Below, piece after piece: positions 24,728 through 60,640 of a stretch of 64,000 nucleotides of DNA. Under the pieces are notes generated by a model that did not search any database, was not told the origin of the DNA, and saw only the letters and a list, made by a program, of their open reading frames with translations. The position numbers and the translations under genes were made by a program. Location: sequence record PQ471516.1; one strand, written 5' to 3'. Every line of letters starts with the position of its first letter. Position 1 is the first letter of the stretch.

Positions 24728-25156
24728 ATGAATATCGAACAAGTAATCCGCTCTAACGCTTTCTTCTCTGCTGAATCTGGTCGTGTTATCGAAGATATCA
24801 AAATCGAAGAACTGATGATCAACGTTAAGTACAAAGAACAGAACGAAGAAATGTCCAGCAGCATCTGTGCTCTACGTGCTCCATTCCGTAGTGAAAAAGC
24901 TAAGAAGCCAGCATATGTTCTAGCGATTGCTCTTGGTTGTGTAGTGAAGAAAGCTATTGACTCCAACCAACTAAATATCAAAGTTGCTCCAATGAACGAT
25001 GAAGAGAACATCAACCTGGACTTCGACGGTCAACTGTCTGAAGAAGAATTCTTCCAGCTTTCTCTGATTCATGACTTCCGTAGCATCAACTTTGACCACA
25101 TTCACTTCATCGACGAAATGGTTGAATTGGTTTCTCAGTACGAAGCTGAACTGTAA
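24728..25156 (+). CDS. EExFFQxS-motif family protein
   Basis: LSEEEFFQLSLIHDF. Confidence 0.8.
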   Translation: MNIEQVIRSNAFFSAESGRVIEDIKIEELMINVKYKEQNEEMSSSICALRAPFRSEKAKKPAYVLAIALGCVVKKAIDSNQLNIKVAPMNDEENINLDFDGQLSEEEFFQLSLIHDFRSINFDHIHFIDEMVELVSQYEAEL

Positions 25157-25169
25157 TAAGTAATAAAAC

Positions 25170-25193
25170 AAGCCTCCTTGAAAGGAGGCTTTT
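25170..25193 (+). terminator. rho-independent terminator
   Basis: AAGCCTCCT/AGGAGGCTT plus T. Confidence 0.75.
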
Positions 25194-25210
25194 GTCATAA
25201 GGATATGTAA

Positions 25211-25768
25211 ATGAAGTTAATAGAACAAATTCAAACCCTATCTAATCAGATTGCAGAGTTCTTGTCTGATAAAGAAGGATTTAAAGTAGAAATCACCCAT
25301 CACGGCGTAGGTATTGTCGTAACTTACCCAAGTGGTGATACAATGGATTATGATGTGTATGAGCTATTGTTATACACCCTAGCAGTACGTAAGCTCGGTA
25401 GTGATATCGAACTTAAAATCAACAAAGATGAAAATGGTAATGAAGTTTTTGCAGTAAACACTGATGCTAAACTTGACATTCCTGCTGGATTCACTAAAAT
25501 CAATGAATCATTTATTGGTTTTAAACATGATTCTATTCAGAGTGTTTTTATTGGTCGTCAGATTGCAAACACCCAATTCCCATATACTGTCATGACATTG
25601 TATAAAAATGGTAACTGGATGCGTCAGGATTTGGTAATGGCTGAAGTACTGTATGCACTAACCCATGACCTAAGCCTTGAACTCGTTGATAGTGCATTCT
25701 GCTTTAAACGTATTCGCAAACTATCTGCTGACATTCAAGCAGAACTAAAAGAACTAAATGATAAATAA
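25211..25768 (+). CDS. hypothetical protein
   Basis: ORF with SD. Confidence 0.75.
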   Translation: MKLIEQIQTLSNQIAEFLSDKEGFKVEITHHGVGIVVTYPSGDTMDYDVYELLLYTLAVRKLGSDIELKINKDENGNEVFAVNTDAKLDIPAGFTKINESFIGFKHDSIQSVFIGRQIANTQFPYTVMTLYKNGNWMRQDLVMAEVLYALTHDLSLELVDSAFCFKRIRKLSADIQAELKELNDK

Positions 25769-25884
25769 ATGTACCAGAAATGGTTAACATAATCATGTTA
25801 CTTTCCTCCCTTATACAATAATGATTTGTTATTCCGCATTTTATTTTTTCATTTCTCTTTTTTCGTACAAATTCTTTTTCGTAC

Positions 25885-25953
25885 TGCCCCTACTTAGGGG
25901 CATTTTTATTGCCTAAAATAAAGTTTTGACATTTGATGATTAGGTGATATAAT
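25885..25953 (+). promoter_or_regulatory. terminator plus sigma70 promoter
   Basis: TGCCCCTA/TAGGGGCA plus T; TTGACA (25926)-16 nt-TATAAT with extended -10 TG. Confidence 0.75.
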
Positions 25954-25980
25954 GTTCATATACATCTTAGAGGATACATT

Positions 25981-26409
25981 ATGATTATCGATTTGCATTC
26001 ATTTTTTAATAAATTCAACGAAGCGGATATCCCTACGTGGGACGTGAAAATCAACCACACTAATAAATCATTGTGGCTACATAAAGGTAATGAATCAATC
26101 CAGATGATGATTAATGATGATTATGATATCACCCGCTTCTACCACATGGAAGAAAACAAAACCTTCGTTAAGGTTGCTTTCGACATATCTGATGATAATC
26201 TGTTCATCAACGTTCTGTCAGAAGGTTCTCATGTCCTGGTTGATGCTAAAATCAAAGAGATTAGTACTATCAAAAGTGAGGAAGGATTGTTTCAACGTTC
26301 AGTTATTGAAGACCTGTACAATGTAGAATACTCTGATCTTGTGAAGCTGAAGACAATCGTAGATAGTCTTAAAGCAAAAGCAAAAGAACTCATCAAAGAG
26401 GTATACTAA
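25981..26409 (+). CDS. EExFFQxS-motif family protein
   Basis: KSEEGLFQRSVIEDL. Confidence 0.8.
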   Translation: MIIDLHSFFNKFNEADIPTWDVKINHTNKSLWLHKGNESIQMMINDDYDITRFYHMEENKTFVKVAFDISDDNLFINVLSEGSHVLVDAKIKEISTIKSEEGLFQRSVIEDLYNVEYSDLVKLKTIVDSLKAKAKELIKEVY

Positions 26410-26873
26410 TGAAAAGCATTATTCAAAACTGGAATCCAGACACAATCAGTACTGAAAGTAAATTGTCTTTTGCGTTCTCTATTATTAACATTGACGTTAT
26501 AGATTATCTATCTATTGATTCGATGGACGCAAAGGAATGCACACATCGTGTGTGGTATGATTATGACCAAGGTGTAGAACTGACACTTACGTATAACACA
26601 GAAGATTTGGTTCAAAGTGAACAATACAGTGTGTGCCTTGATGGTACTATTGGTATTCGAAAGCATTACTTAGATGATGGGAAAGTTATTTCCGAAACAA
26701 TCAATATCACAGATCATGGTTTTAATGAAGAATCTTTCTTCATGGAAAGTACTATGCAGAATTTTGGTACAATGACTTTTGAAGAGTATGTACATCTTAA
26801 AATTCTATATCGCAAAGTACTGGAAGTTGTTACCGAACTGGAAAAGGTGAACCAAAATGATCAACATTCATAA
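26409..26873 (+). CDS. EExFFQxS-motif family protein
   Basis: FNEESFFMESTMQNF. Confidence 0.8.
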   Translation: MKSIIQNWNPDTISTESKLSFAFSIINIDVIDYLSIDSMDAKECTHRVWYDYDQGVELTLTYNTEDLVQSEQYSVCLDGTIGIRKHYLDDGKVISETINITDHGFNEESFFMESTMQNFGTMTFEEYVHLKILYRKVLEVVTELEKVNQNDQHS

Positions 26874-27234
26874 AGAATTGGCATTATTAAAAAAAGATTT
26901 CGATGAAAATACATTAACACTATCATTAAATGCTGGTGTAATTAAAGTTGGTGTTTCCACGTCATACCTTGTTTACCGTAAGAACAGTAAAGAGGTCTTA
27001 TATCATAATGAATCTGGTATAATTTGGGTGTATGATATGGAAAAGAATGTCATCAATTACGTTACTGATTTTTATGCACATAAAACAGTTAATTTTGATG
27101 TTACTGAAGAGGAACTATTCCAGCAATCTCTGATAGAAGCTGATGTACTAATGCCAGAGGAAATTAAAATAATCACAGATGCGGTGCAGTATGTATTTGA
27201 TAGTGTTCAAGAACATGAAGGTACTGAAGGATAG
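26857..27234 (+). CDS. EExFFQxS-motif family protein
   Basis: VTEEELFQQSLIEAD. Confidence 0.8.
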   Translation: MINIHKELALLKKDFDENTLTLSLNAGVIKVGVSTSYLVYRKNSKEVLYHNESGIIWVYDMEKNVINYVTDFYAHKTVNFDVTEEELFQQSLIEADVLMPEEIKIITDAVQYVFDSVQEHEGTEG

Positions 27235-27237
27235 TCC

Positions 27238-27693
27238 ATGAATAAATTACAGGTTTTTGAATATCTAACACGTACATCAATGATGGATTTACCAGAAGTA
27301 ACATGTAAGAACCCAAAAGAATTAATCCGAATCTATCATATTGTTGAGGATTTACAATACAGAATCAATACTGAATATGATTATGTTACCGTGTCTGTAC
27401 AAAACTTAAACTGGAGTGGTTCAGCAGCGGAAATGTTCAACATTTCATACGATACAGCTAATGATTGTTTAAGGGTATTCATTCGAGAAAGTTCTTATTC
27501 CCATATGGATTTTACTGAAGTTCGTGAGGTTAGTAATTGCCTAACTGAAGAAGGGTTTTTCCAAGAATCATTGGTACAGAATTTAGTGTTCACTCAAGAT
27601 GAATTAAAATCTGTTATTGATATTTTGGAGTATATACAGCTAAAAGCCAGAGCGAAATACAAAATAACAGAACAGATTCCGAGAGGTATATAA
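27238..27693 (+). CDS. EExFFQxS-motif family protein
   Basis: LTEEGFFQESLVQNL. Confidence 0.8.
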   Translation: MNKLQVFEYLTRTSMMDLPEVTCKNPKELIRIYHIVEDLQYRINTEYDYVTVSVQNLNWSGSAAEMFNISYDTANDCLRVFIRESSYSHMDFTEVREVSNCLTEEGFFQESLVQNLVFTQDELKSVIDILEYIQLKARAKYKITEQIPRGI

Positions 27694-28140
27694 ATGTTTT
27701 TTAATCCAGTACCTTTTTTTAATTTGTTAAGTGTAACATCAATCCCCGATTTAAAGATTGGTGAAGATTATTCTAATAATTACATACTTGCCCTGGAAAT
27801 TGAATCGGATGATTTCAACTGCTATGTAACATACGATGCAAATGAACATTCTGTAGCTGAACTGGTATTTGTATACATATATAACGTTTATTGTGGTGAT
27901 GGTACAGGGGTTAAATCAGTTGAGGTTGAAACATTTGGCATCAAAGGTTCATTGGTATTGAATGAAAACAACGTAGAATTCAACCTAGATGATTACAGTA
28001 CTGAAGAAGCATTGTTTCAACTTAGTACTATTCAAGATTGCTGCTTAACTTTGAAAGATATAAAAGAATTCAAAGAACAGGTTGACAGTGTGTATGAGAT
28101 GTTATACAATGCTTATCCTGAATTTGAGATTAGAAGATAA
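27694..28140 (+). CDS. EExFFQxS-motif family protein
   Basis: STEEALFQLSTIQDC. Confidence 0.8.
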   Translation: MFFNPVPFFNLLSVTSIPDLKIGEDYSNNYILALEIESDDFNCYVTYDANEHSVAELVFVYIYNVYCGDGTGVKSVEVETFGIKGSLVLNENNVEFNLDDYSTEEALFQLSTIQDCCLTLKDIKEFKEQVDSVYEMLYNAYPEFEIRR

Positions 28141-28795: not shown

Positions 28796-29656
28796 ATGAA
28801 ACCAATCAGAGTACTGTCACTTTTTAATGGAATGAGTGTGGGATACATGGCACTACAAGATGCTGGTATCCCAGTTGAAACGTATTACTCTTCCGAAATT
28901 GATAAGTATGCTATTGCCGAATCCCAAGAGAATTTCCCTGATATTATCCAACTAGGTGACGTTACCAAGTGGAAGGATTGGGATATTGAATGGGATAAGA
29001 TTGACCTCCTTATGGGAGGGTTTCCATGTCAAGCATGGAGCGTAGCAGGTAAACAAGGCGGTTTAAATGACATTCGTGGACAACTGTTCCTTGTTATGGT
29101 TGATATTTTCGAACACATTAAAAGTCTAAATCCAGACTTGAAAGTACTGTTCGAGAATGTTAAAATGAAAGACGATTTCAAGCAATACATCAACAGTATT
29201 CTTGATATGACACCAGTACTGATAAATTCCCATAATTACACGCCTCACTTCAGGCAACGTTATTATTGGTACAGTTCTGATAAATTACTAACTCCACCTG
29301 CATTAATGAATGCACCTGTGCTTCAGGACATTCTGGATGATGGTTGGTATACTGACCGTACCGCTTCGTACTGTATAGATGCCAACTACTTCAAGGGTGG
29401 TGATTGTAATCAATACTTCAATAAGTCCAGGCGTCAATTGGTGTTCAAGAACCCTGATATCAATCGTCAGTACTTACTTGAGAATGGTAAAAGAAACATT
29501 GACTACCGTCACTTAAGTGTAGTAGAATGTTGTAAATTGCAAGGCGTACCAACTGATTATTTCAAGTTATCTAGTAATACACAGGCATATAAAATGCTAG
29601 GAAACGGTTGGACAATGCCAGTCATTTCACATTTGCTTAAAGAGATATTCTTTTAA
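28796..29656 (+). CDS. C5-cytosine DNA methyltransferase
   Basis: VLSLFNG (I), GGFPCQ (IV), ENV (VI), RQRYYW (VIII), KMLGNGW (X). Confidence 0.92.
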   Translation: MKPIRVLSLFNGMSVGYMALQDAGIPVETYYSSEIDKYAIAESQENFPDIIQLGDVTKWKDWDIEWDKIDLLMGGFPCQAWSVAGKQGGLNDIRGQLFLVMVDIFEHIKSLNPDLKVLFENVKMKDDFKQYINSILDMTPVLINSHNYTPHFRQRYYWYSSDKLLTPPALMNAPVLQDILDDGWYTDRTASYCIDANYFKGGDCNQYFNKSRRQLVFKNPDINRQYLLENGKRNIDYRHLSVVECCKLQGVPTDYFKLSSNTQAYKMLGNGWTMPVISHLLKEIFF

Positions 29657-30199: not shown

Positions 30200-30652
30200 A
30201 TGAAAATTGATGAGTTGGTACATTTGCTTCCAAATGTTTACAAAAATGTTTTATTCACTAAAGAACTACATAAGCAAGGTTTCTCTGTTCGCCCAGCATT
30301 ACTTGCATCATCGTATCAATATGTAACAACATATGGAACGAAAGAATTAATTTCATATGACTATGAATCAGACCCAGACTGTTATACATTATCTATTAGT
30401 ATATACAGTGATGAGGAAGAACCTGGTCATGATATTAAAAATATTTCATATGATACAGATGGTCAGTTCAGTATTGAGTACTGTGATGATAGTATAGAAG
30501 AATTCTATTTAGAAGATGTAAATCGTTTGTGTGATGATGATTTTGTGTTCCAACAGTCAACACTAACACCATTGGGTAATACAAATGGTAAATCATGGGA
30601 AACGTGTTTATATTATATGCAAGCAATTTGCACAGCTTTTAAGGGGATTTAA
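30200..30652 (+). CDS. EExFFQxS-motif family protein
   Basis: CDDDFVFQQSTLTPL. Confidence 0.7.
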   Translation: MKIDELVHLLPNVYKNVLFTKELHKQGFSVRPALLASSYQYVTTYGTKELISYDYESDPDCYTLSISIYSDEEEPGHDIKNISYDTDGQFSIEYCDDSIEEFYLEDVNRLCDDDFVFQQSTLTPLGNTNGKSWETCLYYMQAICTAFKGI

Positions 30653-31054
30653 ATGAGTAAGTATACAATAAAAGTAATCTATGAGACGGGTGATACCAGC
30701 AGCAGTAGCATTATCGAAGAAAACATTGACTTACAATGGGAAACCATTGAAGGTGCACGTAATGCATTGCAGGTTCTTAAAGAACACTGGGAATACACTA
30801 TTAGACGAGATAAGTGCCGTACTCGTGATGAAGTCACTGGCCTTGATAGTGAGATGCATACCAAGACTTGGTACTCACCAAGTGGAGGTGAATATCTTTT
30901 TCGAGTGGATGTGAATGGTACAATGTGTGCATGTCATGCACCCTGGGTTGGGTACTTTGAAGTATTGAATAGTGCCGAAGTGGTTCCGGTCGTTGAAGAA
31001 GTAGAGAATCCCGATAAGATCAATTTTGATGCTCTGCGTTGGAATATAAAATGA
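30653..31054 (+). CDS. hypothetical protein
   Basis: ORF with SD. Confidence 0.7.
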   Translation: MSKYTIKVIYETGDTSSSSIIEENIDLQWETIEGARNALQVLKEHWEYTIRRDKCRTRDEVTGLDSEMHTKTWYSPSGGEYLFRVDVNGTMCACHAPWVGYFEVLNSAEVVPVVEEVENPDKINFDALRWNIK

Positions 31055-31479
31055 CAGTACTGAAAAATCTTGCTAAAATAAAGCACCCTGTTGTCTATGG
31101 ATTGTGGAAAAAAGTAGCAACTGATGTTCCAGACAAAACTTGGCGTGGATTAAGTCGTGTTTTAAGTAATGTTAATGACATGACATATTCAACAAAAGAT
31201 GAACTAGTCATTGACATGCGTTTCCACCCAAAACCCAAACTGAGAATCAAGTACATAATCAAGATTCGTGCAACTTCGTTTGACATTAGTATTGAAAAGT
31301 ATTATGATGGCAATTGGTGGGATGACCCAGTTACAGTAATGTCTATGCTTGAAATGAAGTATGAAAATTTCGAAGAAATGATCTTTCAGCACTTGACAAC
31401 CCAACAATATATGGGTATGATAGGTACTCAAGAGTTAGAGATGATTAACGAAATTCGTGACATTTACTTCAAGGAGTAA
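31051..31479 (+). CDS. EExFFQxS-motif family protein
   Basis: NFEEMIFQHLTTQQY; ATGA-coupled start. Confidence 0.7.
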   Translation: MTVLKNLAKIKHPVVYGLWKKVATDVPDKTWRGLSRVLSNVNDMTYSTKDELVIDMRFHPKPKLRIKYIIKIRATSFDISIEKYYDGNWWDDPVTVMSMLEMKYENFEEMIFQHLTTQQYMGMIGTQELEMINEIRDIYFKE

Positions 31480-35782: not shown

Positions 35783-36169
35783 ATGAACAAAGAAGAGATC
35801 ACGAACCTTATTAATTCAATATATGAAGAGGTACAGGACGCAAAGAATATTTGTCAACACAGAACAGGTTACTCAACTGTAGGTGAAGTAGAAACTTTGA
35901 AACTTGCGTTATGGACACCTGACCATCTTAACTACGTGGATTGTATAATCCATAGACAAGACACGGGTGGTTATTACTTTATATCCAATTATAACGCAGA
36001 CAAACAATCTCATTTTTATGTGGAGTTTTATCCACATGCGTTTCATATGGTACAATCCGAAGAGGATGAATTTCAAAAACTCACCACTATAGGAACTGAT
36101 GAGAAATGCATTCCCTTTGAACTCTATGAAAAGATGCAGTTCATTACTAGTGCCATGATGTCATATTGA
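35783..36169 (+). CDS. EExFFQxS-motif family protein
   Basis: QSEEDEFQKLTTIGT. Confidence 0.7.
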   Translation: MNKEEITNLINSIYEEVQDAKNICQHRTGYSTVGEVETLKLALWTPDHLNYVDCIIHRQDTGGYYFISNYNADKQSHFYVEFYPHAFHMVQSEEDEFQKLTTIGTDEKCIPFELYEKMQFITSAMMSY

Positions 36170-36215: not shown

Positions 36216-36722
36216 TTGATGCTCATTACACATGTACCTGAAAGTATTACTGAAATTCTAAACAAAGTTAATGTTAATGAATTTGAACGAACGGTAAGAA
36301 AACAGGATACTTACCACTATAAGCACAAAGATGGCGATCACCAAATAAACATAGATCTTAGTTATCAAACACTAACAATTAAAATGGTAACACGTTGGGA
36401 CTTTGTTCGCAAAGACAGTATTATGCTTAATTTGGATAAAGGTATTATTAGAAAATTCTTCTCTGAATCAAATGGTATCTATCCAAACAATAATAGAATT
36501 TTAACATATCAGTACTTAACTGATGAAGCTGTACATTTCCAGGAGAGCTTAATTTGTGATAACAAGTACTTTCCTAGTATGTCTGATGTTTTGAAATTAA
36601 AAGAACTATATGACTATTACTATAATGATACTAACCTTTGGGATGATGAAATGGAAAAACGTCAAAGGGAACGTAACAAAAATAAAGTCTGGACTGGTTC
36701 ACATTGGATGACACGAAAATGA
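36216..36722 (+). CDS. EExFFQxS-motif family protein
   Basis: TDEAVHFQESLICDN. Confidence 0.75.
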   Translation: MMLITHVPESITEILNKVNVNEFERTVRKQDTYHYKHKDGDHQINIDLSYQTLTIKMVTRWDFVRKDSIMLNLDKGIIRKFFSESNGIYPNNNRILTYQYLTDEAVHFQESLICDNKYFPSMSDVLKLKELYDYYYNDTNLWDDEMEKRQRERNKNKVWTGSHWMTRK

Positions 36723-37132
36723 ATCAATGCTACGAAATTGATGTAACAAAACCTGAAACAAGCACTTTGGAAGCGTTGGAAGACACATTAACAGTACTAC
36801 AATCTCCTGACAAAGAAACAACATTAGTAACCATTGAATACAAGGATTGTACTGTTGATGCTGGAAAACATCCAGAGTGGAAAGCACACCAATATTACTC
36901 AATATACATTCGCTATGAAAATTTCATAACTGATATGGCCTACGCAGAGGACTATCTGTTACTGGAGAATCATTTTGTATTCAAACAAAAAGAATACATG
37001 TATTGTACTCCTGAATATCTCGAAGAAGAAGAATTTCAGTATTCTTTGGTACAGGATGAAGTTGAGTACAACAAAGTATTAGTACTGTCAAAAATACATA
37101 AAATACTAAAGGATAAATATGTCACACAGTGA
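36719..37132 (+). CDS. EExFFQxS-motif family protein
   Basis: LEEEEFQYSLVQDE. Confidence 0.75.
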   Translation: MNQCYEIDVTKPETSTLEALEDTLTVLQSPDKETTLVTIEYKDCTVDAGKHPEWKAHQYYSIYIRYENFITDMAYAEDYLLLENHFVFKQKEYMYCTPEYLEEEEFQYSLVQDEVEYNKVLVLSKIHKILKDKYVTQ

Positions 37133-37986: not shown

Positions 37987-38151
37987 ATGAAATATGACCA
38001 TTTAAAATACTATGCTGATAGAATAAATTATTATCCCTTTTATATAAGAAGCTTAGATGCATTAATATCAAAAAAAGTTGTATATAAACGATCTCAAGCT
38101 GATCTAACCAATATAGCATTCATTCTTGCAGTACTGTCTAAAATGGGATAA
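37987..38151 (+). CDS. MTHEEW-family microprotein 6 (54 aa, diverged)
   Basis: MKYDHLKYYADRI...FILAVLSKMG. Confidence 0.6.
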   Translation: MKYDHLKYYADRINYYPFYIRSLDALISKKVVYKRSQADLTNIAFILAVLSKMG

Positions 38152-38479: not shown

Positions 38480-38643
<164 letters not shown>

Positions 38644-38658
38644 ATAAAGGTTTATTTT

Positions 38659-39048
38659 ATGCATAGTACTGATGTGATATTACACGGAGTGAGATGTACA
38701 AATTTACTTTTGGTATCATATATACCAGCACGTGTAAATCGTCAAGACATGGTATATCCAACTTCTAATACAGCAGTGCTAAAAGATGATACACAACTCG
38801 CCTACCGTTATACATTCGCTTATTCACCATATAGTGCTTTGCATGTTATCTTCAAAGAAGATGGTACAGTACAAGTGAAATATGTTGATAATGATAAGTT
38901 TAACGATGCTATCATCTCCAACTTCACTATACATGATACTGAAGAAGAGTTATTCATGAAAAGTACTATACAAAATGATTTCGGTATAGGCTCTAAAGAA
39001 ATTGAAACATTTCGCTTGATCTGGGATGAGTATTTTGGTACAATTTAG
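38659..39048 (+). CDS. EExFFQxS-motif family protein
   Basis: DTEEELFMKSTIQND; start moved to ATG 38659 (the track start lies in tRNA genes). Confidence 0.75.
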   Translation: MHSTDVILHGVRCTNLLLVSYIPARVNRQDMVYPTSNTAVLKDDTQLAYRYTFAYSPYSALHVIFKEDGTVQVKYVDNDKFNDAIISNFTIHDTEEELFMKSTIQNDFGIGSKEIETFRLIWDEYFGTI

Positions 39049-39080
39049 TACTGATAAATATTAATGAAAGGTATAGAGAA

Positions 39081-39278
39081 ATGACTAAATCCGAACTTCT
39101 GGCTTTATTAGAAAATTATCCAGATGATGCATGTATTGAAGTTGTGCATACTGCACAACATTTTGACATTGAAGATGTTGTACGATACAATGACAAAGGT
39201 GTGATGATTATGGAACTATGCATCGGTGCTTTGAAAACTGTACCAGAATCAACTAAACGAAACTCCCTAAAGGAATAA
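39081..39278 (+). CDS. hypothetical protein
   Basis: MTKSELLALLENYPDD... Confidence 0.75.
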   Translation: MTKSELLALLENYPDDACIEVVHTAQHFDIEDVVRYNDKGVMIMELCIGALKTVPESTKRNSLKE

Positions 39279-39284
39279 AATATT

Positions 39285-39518
39285 ATGGAAACTAATACAA
39301 TTTTAGATGTAGTAAACAGTGTTAATACTGGTGACTTTGTTCACATTCTTTTATCCAACATCCGTGTTAAGGGTATTGTTGAAAGTGTTGATTCTGAAGT
39401 TCTAACTATTGTTGAAGTTGATCCATACGACAATAATAAATCAGTTCGTCTGTGCATTGATGTTTCCAAAATTGTAGCACTCGGTACAGAAATTATTACT
39501 GAAGAAACTAATCTATAA
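39285..39518 (+). CDS. small beta-barrel (Sm/SH3-like pattern) protein
   Basis: VHILL..IRVKGIVESVDSEVLTI...LCIDVSKIVAL. Confidence 0.5.
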   Translation: METNTILDVVNSVNTGDFVHILLSNIRVKGIVESVDSEVLTIVEVDPYDNNKSVRLCIDVSKIVALGTEIITEETNL

Positions 39519-39527
39519 AACGACAAT

Positions 39528-39606
<79 letters not shown>

Positions 39607-39660
39607 CTTAAGAGGATTTAATATGTTTAAAGATGAACGTCCAGATTTGTAAAATAATCA

Positions 39661-39689
39661 TTGACTAAATAATCCAGTACTGATAAAAT
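39661..39689 (+). promoter_or_regulatory. sigma70 promoter with AGTACT in the spacer
   Basis: TTGACT-17 nt-TAAAAT. Confidence 0.75.
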
Positions 39690-39695
39690 AAATTT

Positions 39696-39785
<90 letters not shown>

Positions 39786-39789
39786 ATAT

Positions 39790-39871
<82 letters not shown>

Positions 39872-39892
39872 ATTTTAATTTAAGGTGTATCC

Positions 39893-40057
39893 ATGACGCA
39901 TGAAGAATGGATGAATGATATTAATTTTAGATATTCGGGTATCGGTAGTTGGCGAAAATATCATTGGGAAATTATATCAGACCCAGCAGAATACGATAAA
40001 CTTATAAACCATGAAGTATATCCGTGGTTCTTTATTGAAATAATGGTACGAATATGA
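39893..40057 (+). CDS. MTHEEW-family microprotein 8 (54 aa)
   Basis: MTHEEWMNDINFRYSGIGSW... Confidence 0.8.
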   Translation: MTHEEWMNDINFRYSGIGSWRKYHWEIISDPAEYDKLINHEVYPWFFIEIMVRI

Positions 40058-40218
40058 CGCATGAAGAATGGATGAATGATATTAATTTTAGATATTCGGG
40101 TTTCGGTAAATGGCTAAAGTATCATTGGGAATTTATTACTGATCCTCAAATGTACGATAAACTTATAAATGATCAAGCATATGAAATTTACTTATTTGAA
40201 ATACTGGTCAGAACATGA
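40054..40218 (+). CDS. MTHEEW-family microprotein 9 (54 aa)
   Basis: MTHEEWMNDINFRYSGFGKW...; ATGA coupled. Confidence 0.8.
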   Translation: MTHEEWMNDINFRYSGFGKWLKYHWEFITDPQMYDKLINDQAYEIYLFEILVRT

Positions 40219-40379
40219 CGCATGAAGAATGGATGAGAAAACAAAAGCTAACATGGAATCCTTATTGTTACCAGTTAGACCCAAGAATGTGGGATGTGAT
40301 ACGTATTAAATGTATGTACAAATCATTTCTTGGTGATATAATGGATGTTGAAGTACTGATGAATTTAGTACATCGATAA
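40215..40379 (+). CDS. MTHEEW-family microprotein 10 (54 aa)
   Basis: MTHEEWMRKQKLTW...; ATGA coupled. Confidence 0.8.
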   Translation: MTHEEWMRKQKLTWNPYCYQLDPRMWDVIRIKCMYKSFLGDIMDVEVLMNLVHR

Positions 40380-40409
40380 TAAAAATCTTATTTAAATGGG
40401 ATTGATATC

Positions 40410-41043
<634 letters not shown>

Positions 41044-41049
41044 CAAATC

Positions 41050-41354
41050 GGGCCATTAGCTCACGGTGGTTAGAGCAAACGACTCATCGACAATGGTGAC
41101 TTTCATCAGTAATGGTGATTGAAAAACTGGATGAATTCAGGGAAATCTTAACACGTAATGGTGATGACAATCCTGAGCCAAGCCCAATAAGCGTATTGGG
41201 AAGGTGCAGAGACTAGATGGTACAGTACGTTCTTACTGTGTAATACATCATTAGCGTCCGGCATCCCTATGGGATGATGATATAGTCCGTACTATTGTGA
41301 AAACTATAGATTATACGAATCGTTAGGTACTGTGTTCGACTCACAGATGGCTCA
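41050..41354 (+). tRNA. trnI: intron-containing tRNA-Ile2(CAU): exons 41050-41087 and 41318-41354
   Basis: Spliced cloverleaf GGGCCAT/ATGGCTC, GCTC/GAGC, AACGA-CTCATAA-TCGTT, CTGTG-TTCGACT-CACAG; C4-G69 and C5-G68 as in Ile2. Confidence 0.9.
41088..41317 (+). mobile_element. group I self-splicing intron (230 nt, no ORF)
   Basis: P AATTCAGGGAAA, Q AATCCTGAGC, R GTGCAGAGACTAGA, S ATGATATAGTCC; P1 U-G at the 5' splice site; terminal G41317. Confidence 0.92.
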
Positions 41355-41373
41355 CAAACTTTGAAATAAAATA

Positions 41374-43409: not shown

Positions 43410-43517
<108 letters not shown>

Positions 43518-43600
43518 AAATGATAAATAATACAGTAAGATGACCTCCCCTCAATACGAAAGAGTATGGAGACTTGTTGGTTATCTTACTTCTTAAATTA

Positions 43601-43673: not shown

Positions 43674-43675
43674 CA

Positions 43676-43757
<82 letters not shown>

Positions 43758-43769: not shown

Positions 43770-44210
43770 ATGAAAATGAACATTGTAAAATTTGTTGATT
43801 ATGTATTACAAAACAAAACATGGTCACTACACGATGTACAAGTAGAAGACGTTGGTGAAGTGCGTGTTTTTTGCTATGATCCAGAATTAGAAGAAACCAC
43901 TGATTTGAGTAAATGTTTTAATATTTTTATGGCTTATGAACTCAATAAGAAGTTTTATTCAATTGATATGTATTTGGAACGTTTTACATTTAGAATTTCT
44001 GAATATGATAATTTTAATGATAATTTTAATGATAATTATTACGATATCAGCATTGAATTTAATGTAGATGATATAAACACTGAAGAAAAATTCTTTCAGT
44101 ACTCACTAGTTAATGACACATTGGGCTTGACATTTGATGACGTTAAAGCTATACTTAAAGTTCAGAAATTGATTCCTGAAGATGTGCAAAATCCCTTACG
44201 TGAAGAATAA
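43770..44210 (+). CDS. EExFFQxS-motif family protein
   Basis: NTEEKFFQYSLVNDT. Confidence 0.8.
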   Translation: MKMNIVKFVDYVLQNKTWSLHDVQVEDVGEVRVFCYDPELEETTDLSKCFNIFMAYELNKKFYSIDMYLERFTFRISEYDNFNDNFNDNYYDISIEFNVDDINTEEKFFQYSLVNDTLGLTFDDVKAILKVQKLIPEDVQNPLREE

Positions 44211-44457: not shown

Positions 44458-44589
44458 TGATAGCTTCTAGCCAGTACTGGATTCCTCCTTTTTCACTAGA
44501 AGCTGTCACTTATTCATACGTTTGTTACCCTCATAGCACTCGTTGTTTCAAAAGGTATCTTATTACCCCCCTCTCGTAAGATACTTGAA
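44458..44589 (+). ncRNA. putative sRNA with three C-rich hairpin loops
   Basis: Promoter-like TTACCG-17 nt-TATGCT (44425-44453), three hairpins, no ORF. Confidence 0.6.
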
Positions 44590-44597
44590 TTTAGTAG

Positions 44598-44627
44598 TTG
44601 ACTTTTCAACTTCTTATATGTTATACT
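44598..44627 (+). promoter_or_regulatory. sigma70 promoter
   Basis: TTGACT-18 nt-TATACT with extended -10. Confidence 0.65.
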
Positions 44628-44676
44628 TAGGCTGAATCAAATGATTCGGCCTTTTTCTTTTTTAGGAGTGCTTTTA

Positions 44677-45099
44677 ATGAATTTCAGTACTACAAAAGAA
44701 GCGATAGCACATGCAACAGTTTCTATGTGTAAAGCCATTGAGGATGGAAATTTTAACAAGGATATATACTACCAATTAAACGAACAGCAAGTTGATATTA
44801 ATTGTTATAATGAAAACGGTATGTGTACTTCATACGATAAAGCCAGTAATATCTTCTTTATGATCCGAGAGCTACCAAATGAACAATTATGTAAGTTCTA
44901 TGCCGAAATTGATATGTATAAGAACTATATTAATTTCCAATTCTTGGATATAGATCTATTTCGATTTGACATTACTTCTGATATGTTAAACCTAACAGAA
45001 GAAATGTTTTTCCAAATGAGCTTAGTTTTCGATTTTAAGTACTTCGAATATGAAACATTACGTAAGATATTTCACGTAGCGGGGACTCTACATGAATAA
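44677..45099 (+). CDS. EExFFQxS-motif family protein
   Basis: LTEEMFFQMSLVFDF; ATG 44677 with AGGAG SD. Confidence 0.8.
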   Translation: MNFSTTKEAIAHATVSMCKAIEDGNFNKDIYYQLNEQQVDINCYNENGMCTSYDKASNIFFMIRELPNEQLCKFYAEIDMYKNYINFQFLDIDLFRFDITSDMLNLTEEMFFQMSLVFDFKYFEYETLRKIFHVAGTLHE

Positions 45100-45511
45100 T
45101 AAGATTCTCAAGAAAATTTTAGATAGGACTGATATCTTCATTAAAGGTAGTGATGAAAATTACAACGTTCTGCATGATGGTGATATCGATACTCACATCT
45201 CATCTTATCTAAACAACTACCGTTGTAGTGTAAGTCATTGCAATAATATAGTTTTCGTAACATCATCTGAAACATTAGGATCTGTTGGTTGGATTGACAT
45301 TTTGGAGGATGGATTCACTTATGAAAATGAAGTTCGAGATTACACACTTGAATTTTACGACATTCAGGACTATAATTTAACAGAAGATGTGTACTTCCAG
45401 ATGAGTACTGTCTATGATTTTGATATCATCGAATTTGAAGATTTGAAGAGAATCTTTAAGATTTGTGATTTTTTAAAAGGGAACCGAAATGAATCGACAA
45501 TCTTTGCCTAA
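45092..45511 (+). CDS. EExFFQxS-motif family protein
   Basis: LTEDVYFQMSTVYDF. Confidence 0.8.
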   Translation: MNNKILKKILDRTDIFIKGSDENYNVLHDGDIDTHISSYLNNYRCSVSHCNNIVFVTSSETLGSVGWIDILEDGFTYENEVRDYTLEFYDIQDYNLTEDVYFQMSTVYDFDIIEFEDLKRIFKICDFLKGNRNESTIFA

Positions 45512-45932
45512 AGAGCATGAGGACAACATCCTAAAGCGTTTGGATGAAATCACCAACACCCCATTAAGTGTTCTGGAAGCTAACTACGATGCCAAATTCA
45601 AGCAGTTCTTGGTCAACAATAGTGAATGGTGGTACAGTACTCCAGCATTGGTTTGTGCTGTTAATGTAGGCGTAGGTGATTATGAGTATGCTATTCACTA
45701 TAACCAGAAGAATATAAGCATCATTGTTGATGAAATTGCAGAGTCTGATAAATGGCGAGATGATAACAGTATCTTAAGTATGGCATTGAATTACAAAAAT
45801 GATTCTGAATACTTTCAAGATAGTACTATCAAAGAGATTGAAGTATCTTATAAAGTAATAGAAAAGATGCGTGAATTTTGTTTGTACATACTAAAAGTGA
45901 CAGAGGATCTCCAATGCAAGCATCCGAGATGA
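45489..45932 (+). CDS. EExFFQxS-motif family protein
   Basis: KNDSEYFQDSTIKEI. Confidence 0.75.
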   Translation: MNRQSLPKEHEDNILKRLDEITNTPLSVLEANYDAKFKQFLVNNSEWWYSTPALVCAVNVGVGDYEYAIHYNQKNISIIVDEIAESDKWRDDNSILSMALNYKNDSEYFQDSTIKEIEVSYKVIEKMREFCLYILKVTEDLQCKHPR

Positions 45933-46348
45933 GAAAACTGATTGAGAAAGAACATGGTAGTGTTGATAATTTGGCTACAAAGATCATTGAAAGCCTTAAA
46001 TTTGATGAATACCATAAGAGACTTGCACACAATGTTATTGGTGTTTCAAAAAGAGCCACCATTCTATATTTTCCTCGTTTACAAGAATATAACTTAGAAT
46101 CAAACACAGATGGAACATTCTTTCAGGTGTACCGAAAAGAAGGTGAAGACCGTGTAAGAATGTCATTACAACTTCCCGCCTCTTACACATACAGAGTTAA
46201 TGATATTGAAGAGTCATACAAGACTGAAGAAGAATTCTTTCAGGTTAGTTTGTTTCATGACTTGATCTTTTCTTATGAGTTCTTTAAAGAAGTCGAGTAC
46301 TTGTTTAACTTGGCTGCCGAAAAACTGAAAAAAGATATGGAAAATTGA
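45914..46348 (+). CDS. EExFFQxS-motif family protein
   Basis: KTEEEFFQVSLFHDL; ATG 45914 with GAGGA SD. Confidence 0.8.
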   Translation: MQASEMRKLIEKEHGSVDNLATKIIESLKFDEYHKRLAHNVIGVSKRATILYFPRLQEYNLESNTDGTFFQVYRKEGEDRVRMSLQLPASYTYRVNDIEESYKTEEEFFQVSLFHDLIFSYEFFKEVEYLFNLAAEKLKKDMEN

Positions 46349-46349
46349 G

Positions 46350-46757
46350 ATGTTTTGTCTAACTGATGATATAATTAAAGAAGTTGTAGATATACTGAAG
46401 AACCCTGGTACATTCACTAAATCCACTGAATTGATTACTGAATTTCGTGATGGGTGCTCTTATTACACAAACAATAACAGTACATGCGTGAGTCTTAACC
46501 TATCGGATGGTACTGGAGCGTTAATGCACCGTTACAGTACTCCGTTAGATGGTGTACAATTTTCTTTTTCATTGATTGATAAAGAGTACAGTCTATTCTG
46601 TGATGATTATGAGAGTCTCAATGACCTGTATCTTGATTCTAAAATGTACTTCTCCGAAGAAGAACACTTCATGGATAGTACAGTAGAAAATCTAACAATT
46701 CCTTACACTATTATGGAAGAATTCAATACATTTTGCAGGAACTACGCAAATGCATGA
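46350..46757 (+). CDS. EExFFQxS-motif family protein
   Basis: FSEEEHFMDSTVENL. Confidence 0.8.
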   Translation: MFCLTDDIIKEVVDILKNPGTFTKSTELITEFRDGCSYYTNNNSTCVSLNLSDGTGALMHRYSTPLDGVQFSFSLIDKEYSLFCDDYESLNDLYLDSKMYFSEEEHFMDSTVENLTIPYTIMEEFNTFCRNYANA

Positions 46758-47217
46758 TTTATATGAAGATATTAATGATGTTATTGATGTAGCACTATGG
46801 ACTGTTTTCGAATACAGAACAGAAAACAAACACTGGTCTAATTGGTATACTAATGATAACCAAAAACTACTGCTAGGTCATGGTAATACCGTTGAGTGTC
46901 TTGCATTCACTCGTCATGGGGCAAGTGATGATATAAGGGATTGTTTTAATATACAAATATCACTACTTGGTCAAGGTGTGTTGTATAAGATTGATGTTTA
47001 TCATGATCGTTTATTTGTAGTGTCTGGTAGTGCTACCCGCATTGTATTAGGTTATGACATGAACCCAAGTGAAGCGGATTTGTTTATTGGTGATTTCGAT
47101 AAAGACATTGATTGTGCAAGATACTTTCAATTAAGTACTTTGTATAGTTTATGTAATATTAGTCATCGTGGATTAAAGAAGTTACAGAGTATTGCACGAA
47201 ATTTAAATTCTGAATAA
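46750..47217 (+). CDS. EExFFQxS-motif family protein
   Basis: DCARYFQLSTLYSL. Confidence 0.7.
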   Translation: MHDLYEDINDVIDVALWTVFEYRTENKHWSNWYTNDNQKLLLGHGNTVECLAFTRHGASDDIRDCFNIQISLLGQGVLYKIDVYHDRLFVVSGSATRIVLGYDMNPSEADLFIGDFDKDIDCARYFQLSTLYSLCNISHRGLKKLQSIARNLNSE

Positions 47218-47229: not shown

Positions 47230-47676
47230 ATGAGTTTTAATGGTAACATTGCAAAAGTACTTATTGTGTTTGAAAACTGTGAGTCCTTTTATGTTGAACA
47301 AAAAGACATTCTATGGATGCACATTGGTGATATTAAAACTAAAGTGTTTCGCTATTCTAATGTACTTAGTATCGAAAATGTAGCTGGACAGTTTGGAATT
47401 GCACTACGCAAAGAAATTGAAACCGAATTTTGGGGAAATCAAACATTACTTAATCGTTTGGATATGCGTGATGTTACTAACATTACTCTATATGACGTTA
47501 ACAATGAGAGCGTCTCTTATGTTGTTGAATGGGCTGATTATAGCGATCAACAAACGTCAATCAATCAACGTACTTTCGTGACCCCCGCTGGTAATGTTGT
47601 ATTCGTCAGTACTACATCTTCTTTAGTGGATGTTGATGTTGAACATATTGATTTAAACGCTAAGTACATGTCTTGA
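47230..47676 (+). CDS. hypothetical protein
   Basis: AGGAG SD. Confidence 0.75.
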   Translation: MSFNGNIAKVLIVFENCESFYVEQKDILWMHIGDIKTKVFRYSNVLSIENVAGQFGIALRKEIETEFWGNQTLLNRLDMRDVTNITLYDVNNESVSYVVEWADYSDQQTSINQRTFVTPAGNVVFVSTTSSLVDVDVEHIDLNAKYMS

Positions 47677-47712
47677 CAACAGTATGTGCACGCTGTATAA
47701 TGTGCACATATT
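47673..47712 (+). promoter_or_regulatory. sigma70 promoter with -10 in a hairpin loop
   Basis: TTGACA-17 nt-TATAAT; AGTATGTGCAC/GTGCACATATT. Confidence 0.8.
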
Positions 47713-47732
47713 AACTTAATGGGTATTTAAAA

Positions 47733-48161
47733 ATGAGTACAGTAAAAATCAATGTACACTTTCTTGATTCATGGAAAGATGTTTGTACTGGTGTTAGTGA
47801 AGTAGAATACAGTACTGAAACTATCCACGCCGAAGATACATGGCAAGCTGAATCACAGTTAGAAAAACTCAAAGAAACAGTAGGAACATCAGTTTCTGCT
47901 GGTACTGAACATACGCGTAAAATCATTGGTATTGATGAAATTGCACAGGTTCAGGTATTCTTGACGAACGAACAAATGATGAAGTTCATTCTTGACAACA
48001 ATGTGGAACTTGCATTGGATGGTTCAGTATGGCAGAAAACTGACGGTACAAAAGTACGAGTGAAGTACCGTGTTACCATCAATGGGACTGCGATGTGTGG
48101 CATGGATTTGGAAGATGCAATCAATTACTACGTAAACAACATAAGAGGGAAAAAATGCTAA
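47733..48161 (+). CDS. hypothetical protein
   Basis: ORF after promoter. Confidence 0.75.
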   Translation: MSTVKINVHFLDSWKDVCTGVSEVEYSTETIHAEDTWQAESQLEKLKETVGTSVSAGTEHTRKIIGIDEIAQVQVFLTNEQMMKFILDNNVELALDGSVWQKTDGTKVRVKYRVTINGTAMCGMDLEDAINYYVNNIRGKKC

Positions 48162-55904: not shown

Positions 55905-56867
55905 TTGAAAAAGCTAGATCTAAATGCAATTGCTGATGAAGTACTGGATGAATGTTTTGCTAGTGAAGAAGTCAACGTATTAGAGGCAATTGATGCCGTT
56001 GAAGAAGAACATGATGACCACAAGTTCGAGAAGCCTAACACTGGTATCAGTTTAACTCGTCCTAAAGGTGTAACGAATGAAATGCTCATCCAGGAAGTAC
56101 GTGATGGCATTAACGTTGAAAAGAACATTGACCTTCTAGTACGTTACAACTACCCAATGATTGTTAGTACTGCTCGTAAATGTACATGTTTCATCCCATT
56201 TGAAGATAAGATTTCATATGGTGTTGAAGGTTTAATGCGAGCGATTCATACATTTGATCCTACTAAGAACGTTAAGTTCATTACCTATGCAACATCAACT
56301 GTGTATATGACAATCTATAACGAAAGTGCAGACGCTAACTACTTAGTGCACTTCCCACGTTATATGAGTGTTAACAACATTTATGTGAAACGTTGTGTAG
56401 AAGCGTACCAAAAGAAATATGGTAGGTTCCCAACTCCAGAGATGGTCGCTGAAGAGACTGGTATTGAGATTCAACACGTTAAGAATTGTCTAACCTACAC
56501 CAATACTTATATGGCATTGGATATGAAATTGAGTACTGATTCAGAAAGTACCTTGTCTGACATTGTTACTACAGTTGATCCTGATTACAACTTAGGTGCA
56601 GAAACTATCAGTATTCCACTGGTACAAAGTATTGCAGATATGATGCATAATCTATCTGAAAAAGACCGTGAGTTGATTGAACGTGTACATGGTATTGGTT
56701 CTTGTGCTGAACCAGAAACGCTACGAGAAATCATTGAGAGCGGTTTTGAAGATGAGAAGGGTAAAGTCATTACTGCTCGTTCTTCCTTGCACCGTAAGTA
56801 CTCTGATGCAATGGAACGCCTACGTAAGATGGTTAAGTCCAGAGGTTATGAGTTCGAAGATTTTTAA
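55905..56867 (+). CDS. sigma70-family RNA polymerase sigma factor
   Basis: Region 2 (D.I..G..GL.RAI..FDP.K..KF.TYA), region 3 PTPE.VA, region 4 TL.EI. Confidence 0.9.
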   Translation: MKKLDLNAIADEVLDECFASEEVNVLEAIDAVEEEHDDHKFEKPNTGISLTRPKGVTNEMLIQEVRDGINVEKNIDLLVRYNYPMIVSTARKCTCFIPFEDKISYGVEGLMRAIHTFDPTKNVKFITYATSTVYMTIYNESADANYLVHFPRYMSVNNIYVKRCVEAYQKKYGRFPTPEMVAEETGIEIQHVKNCLTYTNTYMALDMKLSTDSESTLSDIVTTVDPDYNLGAETISIPLVQSIADMMHNLSEKDRELIERVHGIGSCAEPETLREIIESGFEDEKGKVITARSSLHRKYSDAMERLRKMVKSRGYEFEDF

Positions 56868-58723: not shown

Positions 58724-58968
58724 TGAAATATATTGTTTTAGTAGTAATGGCGTTTTTACTGAGTGCTTGTGATGCAAGTACGAAAGACCGAACCAGTGAA
58801 TTCCTTCTTCCTACTGAGTTAAAGGATGCTGGGTGTAAGATTTACCGTATGCGTCAGGAAGGTGATGGTGCAACTTTGTACACAGTTTACTGCCCTCATG
58901 CTAATACCAGTACATCTTTCCGTACAGGAAAGACAACCGTACATGCATCTGTCATCAATGGTGAATAA
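58723..58968 (+). CDS. lipoprotein
   Basis: Lipobox LSAC. Confidence 0.75.
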   Translation: MKYIVLVVMAFLLSACDASTKDRTSEFLLPTELKDAGCKIYRMRQEGDGATLYTVYCPHANTSTSFRTGKTTVHASVINGE

Positions 58969-58969
58969 C

Positions 58970-59335
58970 ATGGGATTGGACACAACTAAAGCCCAAGAAC
59001 TACATAGGCGAGCAATGAATGAAGAGTTTTTAGCAAACATTCGCTATAAGATGGAGAAGCTATATCGTAGTGCTGAAATCTTAGAAGACAAAAAACCTTC
59101 CATGACTACAAAATATTTCAATATCACTAACGACATTTGTTATAGTCCAGGTGAAATTTGGATTGAGTGGGAGTCTTGGACAGGGGATATTCTTCGTGTA
59201 CAAGGTTACTGTGTTCAATACGCTTTCGACGGTAATTCTAAATCACTGAAGGTACTATGTACTAATACGAATGATGTAGTGGATGTCAACTTACATTGTA
59301 TTAAATGGGTTGACTTTGGAGATGTAGATGAATAA
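58970..59335 (+). CDS. hypothetical protein
   Basis: Start moved to ATG 58970. Confidence 0.65.
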   Translation: MGLDTTKAQELHRRAMNEEFLANIRYKMEKLYRSAEILEDKKPSMTTKYFNITNDICYSPGEIWIEWESWTGDILRVQGYCVQYAFDGNSKSLKVLCTNTNDVVDVNLHCIKWVDFGDVDE

Positions 59336-59588
59336 AATTAAATTCATTGTACTTATGGTTCTCATGTGTTTTTCACTCACTGGGTGTGATGAAGACCTTT
59401 CAGCTAAAACATTAGCTCGCTGGAACTGTAAGATGACTGGTGAGAAGTTCAAAACAGTCGAAAGTGTTTGTGTTGGTGAAGGTAGAAGCCGTTGTGATAA
59501 AATGGTTGACCACGAAGTGGAATTGTTTGTATATGATTGTCCAACAAAGGGTCGAGTACTGAGTAAAAGTGAGTTAATTTATAATTGA
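59328..59588 (+). CDS. lipoprotein
   Basis: Lipobox LTGC. Confidence 0.75.
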   Translation: MNKIKFIVLMVLMCFSLTGCDEDLSAKTLARWNCKMTGEKFKTVESVCVGEGRSRCDKMVDHEVELFVYDCPTKGRVLSKSELIYN

Positions 59589-59621
59589 CAGTACACCACA
59601 AAAGGGATACAATGTATCCCT
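59585..59621 (+). promoter_or_regulatory. sigma70 promoter with -10 in a hairpin
   Basis: TTGACA-17 nt-TACAAT; AGGGATAC/GTATCCCT. Confidence 0.75.
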
Positions 59622-59644
59622 ACTTTAATCGAAGAGGCAAATAA

Positions 59645-59854
59645 ATGACTACTAATGAAATGCTGAAAGCAATCTGGGATAAAGGTTATGAACTGAAAGT
59701 AACCAGTACTGAGATTCGTGTATTCAAGACTGAGTACTGTGAATATCTGGATTTAGATACTTATAACAGTATTGTCGTTGAGCAGCACAAAGGTAATGTT
59801 ACTGAAAGTATTGATTCAGTACTTAAACGTTCTTTAGCGATCATTGGTGCTTAA
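59645..59854 (+). CDS. hypothetical protein
   Basis: GAGG SD. Confidence 0.75.
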   Translation: MTTNEMLKAIWDKGYELKVTSTEIRVFKTEYCEYLDLDTYNSIVVEQHKGNVTESIDSVLKRSLAIIGA

Positions 59855-59961
59855 AATGAATTCAGATTTACAGAAGATGATTGGATTTGGTATTTCTGTG
59901 TTTTTTGTTGTGATTTCTTTTGCAATTTTCATCCCTAAACTATTTCATTAAGAGGTGTATT

Positions 59962-60156
59962 ATGATTTCTTTATATGTTGCTGTTATGCTCACTCATGGA
60001 CAAATCGACCGCACCGTAGGTAAAGGTGTTTACACTACAGCAGATGAATGTTACACTGCTACTGCTTGGCCTCAAGATGAAGGTTCAAGTAATGAATTCA
60101 AATGTCTCAAAGTTAAAGGTGACTTTGTTAATCTAAAGGTTGTTGAGGTTAAATAA
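59962..60156 (+). CDS. small exported protein
   Basis: ATG 59962 with GAGGTG SD; two Cys. Confidence 0.65.
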   Translation: MISLYVAVMLTHGQIDRTVGKGVYTTADECYTATAWPQDEGSSNEFKCLKVKGDFVNLKVVEVK

Positions 60157-60640
60157 TGGACATAAACAGATTACTATCGATCATTTCCAGTAAATGTAGT
60201 AACTCCTTTAATTATATGAACAAGGTTCAAGTAGTCTCCGAGGAATGTTATGGAGTAACAACTATACAGTTTTTGGATCTCGATAGTAATAGTTTATGTT
60301 ATATATACTTGACAACCCGTAGTGATGAACTTAAAAAACCGAAATTGTATTATTTGGCAAACAGTGTTCAGACACGCGTGATATTGAGATACTTTATTAT
60401 CCTGGAAAATCTACACGCGAAATTGTTTATGACATGTACGCACTAGATGATAACTTTGTTATTGATTACAGTACTGAAGAAAAGGTTTTTCAACAAAGTT
60501 TAGTGCACAACTTTGTGTTGGGTGATCCTGGCATTCCAAAGATTTTTAAAATTCTAGATTCAATTACAGTGGATTTTGAATTTCATATGTGCATACGTTC
60601 TGAATACTTGGATGATTTTGTGGAGATTTTTGGTTTATGA
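60156..60640 (+). pseudogene. frameshifted EExFFQxS-motif family gene
   Basis: ORFs 60156..60446 and 60434..60640 join at the A6 run 60333-60338; STEEKVFQQSLVHNF in the second frame. Confidence 0.65.

Follow-up and report, generated by a model that had tools for sequence, protein, structure and literature searches.

The 64,000-nucleotide stretch of DNA analyzed here (the window) is part of the genome of Escherichia phage Turkey5 (PQ471516.1, 351,311 bp), with which it is identical in sequence over record positions 248001–312000. It contains 21 paralogous genes, all on the + strand, whose products share a short C-terminal motif (F[QM]xS[LTV] in the 18 intact members, degenerate in two others) and have N-terminal parts that can scarcely be aligned with each other. 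These genes belong to a multigene family that is specific to the clade of Rak2-like jumbo phages (Asteriusvirus, Alcyoneusvirus and their relatives). The original prediction, made from the window sequence, described the motif as a constant docking site in a modular adaptor system with variable target-binding domains. The models obtained here suggest a different picture. The products look like one fast-diverging domain family, rather than a docking module shuffled onto unrelated domains, since the invariant phenylalanine of the motif has a constant position, an AlphaFold2 model of one member is a compact domain, and predicted structures in the BFVD library match over the full length.

Members of the family in Turkey5

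Turkey5 is an Asteriusvirus-type jumbo phage of 351 kb. The closest relative of the window is phage vB_EcoM_JNE01 (JNE01), with a DNA identity of 97.9%; PBECO4, 121Q, phAPEC6 and other Asteriusvirus-type jumbo phages of E. coli and Salmonella are more distant. Among Asteriusvirus isolates, Sharanji and slurp01 were obtained on the laboratory K-12 strain MG1655. Every gene named in the original prediction is annotated as "hypothetical protein" in GenBank. All 21 motif-bearing open reading frames (ORFs) listed there are present and are named below by the window position at which they start. Only the ORF given as 36216 shifts, to an annotated ATG at 36219. Of the 21 paralogs, 18 are intact and have the motif, one is disrupted by a frameshift, and in two the motif is degenerate.

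The first intact member (24728–25156, 142 residues; best match in the PHROGs database phrog_23322) has the canonical motif. A tandem run follows at 25981–26409 (142 residues; phrog_24941), 26409–26873 (154 residues, with the motif glutamine replaced by methionine), 26857–27234 (125 residues), 27238–27693 (151 residues) and 27694–28140 (148 residues). Further members are located at 30200–30652 (150 residues, with DDD as the acidic triplet; phrog_21500), 36219–36722 (167 residues, with a basic C-terminal tail that places 61 residues after the invariant phenylalanine), 36719–37132 (137 residues), 38659–39048 (129 residues), 40410–40775 (121 residues) and 43770–44210 (146 residues, the member that was modeled with confidence). 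A second run consists of 44677–45099 (140 residues), 45092–45511 (139 residues), 45489–45932 (147 residues, the subject of a second model of low confidence), 45914–46348 (144 residues), 46350–46757 (135 residues) and 46750–47217 (155 residues).

The motif serine is replaced in both degenerate members. The product of 31051–31479 (142 residues, near-neutral isoelectric point, pI) matches the family hidden Markov model (HMM) with an E-value of 1.1e-4, and its PBECO4 ortholog matches the family at 1.2e-11. The product of 35783–36169 (128 residues) has a motif-like stretch and is a probable diverged member, with a marginal E-value of 0.053 that falls short of significance. Two other genes, 21697 and 48675, had been put forward as possible diverged members. 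This proposal is without support, as the best E-values are 0.13 for 21697 and 0.013–0.8 for 48675; in the family-profile search, 21697 had no match and 48675 had an E-value of 0.8.

The broken member (60156–60640) is interrupted by a single frameshift and appears in the annotation as two ORFs; its C-terminal piece matches the family HMM with an E-value of 1.8e-8. An unbroken copy of 166 residues is present in JNE01 (JNE01 locus 44569–45069), to which the N-terminal piece is 70% identical and the C-terminal piece 100% identical. The gene is therefore a mosaic, although the two genomes are otherwise about 98% identical, which suggests recombination inside the gene.

Three further, longer members, each with a basic N-terminal extension of 70–85 residues, lie downstream of the window in Turkey5, which raises the number of copies from the 21 of the window to at least 24. 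Members are acidic proteins of 120–170 residues in which the invariant phenylalanine is about 100 residues from the N-terminus (the motif lies 87–125 residues from the N-terminus and 28–61 from the C-terminus in the 18 intact members). The exceptions are the three longer downstream members and two near-neutral ones. Three family-sized ORFs without the motif, 47230 and 47733 (47230–48161) and 30653 (30653–31054), adjoin the family runs and match members weakly (E-values of 0.002–0.05 in a database of about 190 sequences). These ORFs are perhaps family members whose helix signature has been lost.

A constant C-terminal element and divergent N-terminal parts

The extended motif occurs 15 times, against 0.01 occurrences expected from shuffles, and the short motif is found 19 times in + strand ORFs, against 0.8 expected when residues are shuffled within ORFs. 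Leave-one-out profiles built from the last 45 or so residues recovered 15 of the 18 intact members with E-values from 1e-5 to 5e-11; scores were weaker for 30200, 36719 and 46750. The corresponding profiles of the N-terminal 100 or so residues never gave an E-value below 0.3. An all-against-all phmmer comparison of the N-terminal parts left 86 unconnected groups among about 121 public representatives, the groups stayed unmerged upon iterative profile growth, and hhalign comparisons between 15 subfamily alignments of this region scored no better than reversed decoys. Scans of PHROGs with the N-terminal parts alone gave a single cross-match, from 46750 to phrog_17453, the group of 43770 (3.9e-4). 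The contrast first noticed by eye, between a constant C-terminal element and N-terminal parts that are barely alignable, thus holds between subfamilies for pairwise, iterative and profile-profile methods. Between orthologs, divergence is usually somewhat greater in the N-terminal than in the C-terminal part.

The window paralogs are only 12–28% identical to each other, so the duplications are old. The array resembles the known tandem amplifications of small genes in very large phage genomes in its lineage-specific gain and loss, but differs from recent near-identical repeats in the age of its copies.

Distribution among jumbo phages

A search of 1.84 billion cluster representatives with a profile of the 18 paralogs identified 126 protein clusters (50% identity) at E-values of 0.001 or lower. 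Of 125 profile matches, 122 carry the strict motif, and nearly all are 110–220 residues long. A homolog search with the paralog alignment returned almost exclusively orthologs of its first sequence. The PBECO4 locus contains 20 members and the phAPEC6 locus 21. In Klebsiella phage RaK2, which is from another genus, at least 11 members form a syntenic block with the same neighbors on either side (a TelA-like gene, an exonuclease, the array, a DNA methyltransferase and tRNA genes, in this order). Searches with tblastn and of BFVD add K64-1, Muenster, Salmonella phages Munch and 7t3, Erwinia phage Hallingskeid, Cronobacter phage GAP32 and Pectobacterium phage CBB. The 45489 product forms one single cluster and is seen only in the Turkey5/JNE01 lineage.

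No Pfam or NCBIfam model matches the window members, and 124 of the 125 family representatives lack a Pfam domain. The remaining representative matches PF21220 (RecQ-1-like_HTH) at 3.7e-12, a match that was not recovered in single scans of 33 likely candidate representatives. PHROGs contains the same proteins but does not record their shared motif or domain: the family is split there into at least 21 separate groups, all without functional annotation (phrog_17453, 24941, 23322, 27549, 24510, 21500, 24321, 30548 and at least 13 more). The best PHROG differs from one window member to the next, and the weaker cross-matches of members run through the C-terminal element. Published genome papers mention paralogs in general terms only, and our literature search found no description of the family, its motif or its clade-wide syntenic array.

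Predicted fold

The product of 43770 was modeled with AlphaFold2 from an alignment of 29 orthologs and 17 paralogs. The model is a single compact α+β domain with a predicted local distance difference test score (pLDDT) of 87 and a predicted template modeling score (pTM) of 0.80. It consists of an N-terminal helix (residues 5–15), six strands within residues 19–98, and three C-terminal helices, namely a short one (residues 99–102) and two longer ones (residues 105–114 and 122–132). The motif forms the middle one of these three helices, which come after the six-stranded sheet, and the C-terminal block is the most confident region (pLDDT 93–96). The original description of an amphipathic helix following the motif agrees with this model and with the hydrophobic positions that recur every three to four residues beyond the motif.

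In BFVD, an independently predicted ortholog matches the 43770 model with a template modeling (TM) score of 0.90–0.95. Uncharacterized proteins of GAP32, CBB, RaK2 and other phages, with sequence identities of 12–22%, align over the full length with TM scores of 0.43–0.61. These scores exceed what the C-terminal third alone could yield. Moreover, the position of the invariant phenylalanine is nearly fixed across 122 clusters (median 105, interquartile range 99–110). The N-terminal parts are thus unlikely to be unrelated domains, since their length would then vary.

A fold search of the Protein Data Bank (PDB) with Foldseek gave several p32/gC1qR entries as its best matches, none of them significant (E-values of at least 0.08 (0.079), TM scores of 0.28–0.33), and a sequence-profile search of the PDB returned nothing relevant. 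SUKH-type immunity proteins and type III chaperone-like folds were also considered and were dropped, as neither Pfam nor fold matches pointed to them.

The motif helix

Conservation was calculated for 122 representatives anchored on the invariant phenylalanine, with residue names taken from the 43770 product. The commonest residue has a share of 0.61 at Thr104, 0.94 at Glu105, 0.86 at Glu106, 1.00 at Phe109, 0.88 at Gln110, 0.99 at Ser112, 0.53 at Leu113 and 0.73 at Asp116. Hydrophobic residues account for 0.97 of the sequences at Phe108, 1.00 at Val114 and 0.87 in the column of Thr117. The manner of alignment inflates the four anchoring columns, but this bias is small because 122 of the 125 matches have the anchoring residues.

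Only positions 107, 111 and 115 (i, i+4 and i+8) are variable, and these form one narrow stripe along the helix; three of its four faces are therefore constrained. Such a pattern suits a helix clamped between the sheet and another element, rather than a docking peptide that is contacted from one side. The conserved polar positions 105, 112 and 116 line up alongside the hydrophobic face. They may form a network of hydrogen bonds inside the protein, a contact between subunits of an oligomer, or a binding site common to the family.

Acidity, promoters, virion content and divergence

The members were originally described as acidic, and indeed 18 of 20 have a pI of 4.05–5.3, compared to a median of 5.8 for other window ORFs of similar size. 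The median pI of the family is 4.75 and the median net charge is −10, a strongly negative charge as in DNA-mimic proteins; a few members are neutral or basic.

Near-consensus sigma-70-type promoter sites (at least 11 of 12 matching positions) number 27 on the + strand, which is the coding strand, and none on the − strand. For weaker matches, the total count is not above that in shuffled sequences. Several sites are situated just upstream of the tandem runs. A 12/12 site with an extended −10 element (25926–25953, + strand) heads the run 25981–28140 and is preceded by a terminator-like hairpin (25885–25902). A 10/12 site, also with an extended −10 element (44598–44627, + strand), heads the run 44677–47217 and is followed by a hairpin (44629–44652). 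The original assignment of the runs to promoters is thus borne out as far as sigma-70-like sites are concerned. PA5oct, a relative, depends on the host RNA polymerase and uses such promoters (PMC7318152); by this analogy, the family genes would be expressed early.

The phAPEC6 members (gp039c, 054c, 083c, 084c, 087c, 088c, 092c, 093c, 102c, 103c, 120c, 121c, 127c–132c, 134c and two unannotated ORFs) are absent from the 62 virion proteins identified by mass spectrometry in that one proteome, although products of neighboring genes are present (Table 1, PMC7247149). Likewise, at the 121Q and PBECO4 loci, virion annotations are attached to some neighboring genes but to no member.

Members have a median identity of 37% to their counterparts at the PBECO4 locus, compared to 59% for neighboring genes (p 5e-4), and 6 of the 20 members lack an ortholog-like match in PBECO4. 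This faster divergence is in keeping with an arms-race arsenal.

Proposed role of the family

We tentatively propose that these genes encode a fast-diverging single-domain family, with the motif helix as the keystone of the fold, that is expressed by the host polymerase and supplies soluble acidic binders of host proteins. Taken as a whole, the chances of this proposal fall a little short of even; its structural and evolutionary half, taken separately, is rather likely to be correct. According to this proposal, each member would be one strongly acidic, soluble domain of about 140 residues, with an N-terminal helix, an antiparallel β-meander and three C-terminal helices. The motif helix would pack on the sheet through its hydrophobic face, which includes the invariant phenylalanine, and so serve as a structural keystone. 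The helix would be kept for this reason, while the sheet and loops diverge past sequence detection. The conserved polar stripe (Glu105, Ser112 and Asp116 of the 43770 product) would possibly provide an additional shared site for oligomerization or for a partner. The tandem genes would be read by the host RNA polymerase from the sigma-70-type promoters, presumably early in infection. The products would then most likely bind or inhibit different host proteins stoichiometrically, in host takeover or counter-defense, and each paralog would expose an acidic surface of its own on the common scaffold.

Several observations weigh against this proposal. The near-invariant polar residues of the helix (Glu 94%, Ser 99%, Gln 88%) exceed the usual needs of a purely structural helix, and the burial of the motif residues is deduced from periodicity. 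The common fold rests on one confident model and on library models. For 45489, which deviates most among the members, AlphaFold2 gave a model with a pLDDT of 62; it keeps the order of elements but has three strands and extra N-terminal helices, and its BFVD matches are weak, although the top two are again family members. In addition, the N-terminal parts of different subfamilies are linked by no sequence method, and some members may fold differently there.

Alternative explanations

The conserved helix could instead dock onto a single hub common to all members, be it a host machine or a protein of the phage, to which the variable remainder would bring different targets. We consider this unlikely, even though the polar positions of the helix are near-invariant across the 122 clusters, the N-terminal parts have no detectable homology, and the three Turkey5 members with an extra basic N-terminal extension indicate that the domain can be combined with other segments. 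The original prediction compared the family to F-box-type proteins, and F-box/PRANC-type families do likewise consist of many paralogs that differ except for a short constant stretch close to one terminus. F-box proteins contain a separable hub-binding domain joined to recognizable, differing interaction domains. In contrast, the phage family has neither an F-box match nor a recognizable second domain, its members are constant in size, and the element is located inside a predicted single fold. Pfam and NCBIfam searches of the window members revealed no F-box or other hub-binding domain. The module was found neither by itself nor on a recognizable foreign domain and, with the one PF21220 match set aside, no recognizable domain was found in the N-terminal parts of the 125 representatives, contrary to the expectation of a constant module on different domains. 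The near-fixed position of the phenylalanine, the compact predicted domain with its confidently placed helix, the full-length BFVD matches and the three constrained helix faces likewise argue against a modular adaptor. Taken together, the models come close to a uniform fold with the motif as its core, which is the outcome that the original prediction itself had named as its refutation.

If a hub exists, the DNA sliding clamp is a candidate, because the Gln-x-Ser-(Leu/Thr)-aliphatic core of the motif partly overlaps the clamp-binding consensus, in which Gln, Ser, Leu and then a hydrophobic residue occur with the same spacing (PMC6511837). However, the fourth position is threonine in almost half of the family members, the last position is aliphatic rather than aromatic, and the conserved flanking acidic pair and phenylalanine have no counterpart in the clamp motif. 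Clamp-binding motifs are also normally found in flexible, accessible segments (PMC6511837), whereas the phage element is a predicted helix (pLDDT 93–96) within a folded domain. The strongest form of the idea, in which more than 20 hypervariable acidic scaffolds plug through the helix into one hub, such as the sliding clamp or the transcription machinery, and each brings or blocks another target, is distinctly improbable. If true, such a shared-hub system would be a bacterial-virus counterpart of the adaptor families of eukaryotic viruses.

Alternatively, the conserved helices could assemble homo- or hetero-oligomers that serve as nucleic-acid charge mimics, or as sponges for basic DNA- or RNA-binding host proteins. 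The extreme net charge (a median of −10 in 140 residues) and the acidic low-complexity loops of some members, which vary between orthologs, speak for this possibility. p32/MAM33 proteins are acidic, doughnut-shaped trimers, and p32/gC1qR entries gave the top PDB fold matches of the 43770 model. The p32 fold also consists of an N-terminal helix, an antiparallel sheet and C-terminal helices, and thus looks the same in its order of elements. Nevertheless, this explanation is quite unlikely, since the fold matches are not significant, no sequence or Pfam MAM33 match was found, the phage proteins are 40–60 residues shorter, and a few members are neutral or basic.

The array could also be a by-product of recombination in a hyperplastic region with many tRNA and homing endonuclease genes, consisting of decaying duplicates that are kept by chance and in which only the folding core is conserved. 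One copy is indeed frameshifted, some members lack a PBECO4 ortholog, and the array is interspersed with tRNA genes and an HNH endonuclease gene. Yet different genera have kept both the array and its location, 20 of the 21 copies are intact, and more than 120 clusters retain the motif, a conservation that requires purifying selection. We regard decay as highly unlikely.

T4 internal proteins share a targeting sequence for capsid loading, and by the same logic of a constant signal on variable cargo the conserved element could be a targeting signal that loads varied proteins into the capsid for co-injection. This is barely credible, despite the inner body described in the phAPEC6 capsid (PMC7247149), given that none of the approximately 21 phAPEC6 members is a detected virion protein, that members lack virion annotation in 121Q and PBECO4, and that sigma-70-type promoters are unusual for structural genes.

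Neighboring genes and other loci

ARAGORN predicts seven tRNA genes in window positions 38480–43754 (Leu-taa, Gly-tcc, Ser-tga, Ser-gct, Asn-gtt and two Thr-tgt), which are interleaved with family members and with an HNH endonuclease gene (41374–42078). The GenBank record differs in that it contains a 119-nucleotide "tRNA-Leu" at 38028–38146 and lacks the Leu gene at 38480–38564 and the Gly gene at 39530–39605. Three abutting ORFs of 165 nucleotides, encoding 54 residues each, form another small tandem family at 39893–40379. The triplet is kept in JNE01, 121Q (gp125–127) and phAPEC6 (gp094c–096c), and at least two of its ORFs are present in PBECO4.

A phage-encoded sigma factor of the sigma-70 family, annotated as RpoS/RpoD-like, is located among small ORFs at 55905–56867. 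It is a candidate regulator of a switch away from the sigma-70-type promoters of the family. At the position of the DNA cytosine methyltransferase, JNE01 has an ORF of 1,890 nucleotides (JNE01 locus 9567–11456), about 1 kb longer than the 861 nucleotides in the window (28796–29656). This is why the DNA match between the window and JNE01 falls into two pieces. The longer ORF may represent an insertion or a fusion.

Outside the window, a second paralog array of 11–12 genes encoding proteins of about 380–450 residues, annotated as RCC1, HERC1-like or Kelch (β-propeller), is found on the minus strand of the Turkey5 record (330035–345731). The phAPEC6 virion proteome includes several "DNA condensation proteins" of about 40 kDa (gp003–gp010, gp549 and gp551), which may be counterparts of this second array.

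Implications

Tandem paralog arrays of small accessory genes are already well known in jumbo phages; for this family, its motif and its clade-wide array, no earlier description was found. Nothing in these data shows a surprising mechanism, but the family is real and large, and is a good target for structure determination. In a phage of 351 kb, about 4% of all genes belong to it, as do at least 11 to 21 genes per examined locus in the relatives. It has neither a Pfam model nor a solved relative, yet its array is syntenic across phage genera and more than 120 sequence clusters are public. Treating it as one family merges at least 21 PHROGs without functional annotation into a single target, such that solving one or two structures and following expression through a single time course could lead to annotation of hundreds of jumbo-phage genes. 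If the members are binders of host proteins, they would constitute a natural library of many specificities on one scaffold, and would help to map what a jumbo phage must neutralize in E. coli.

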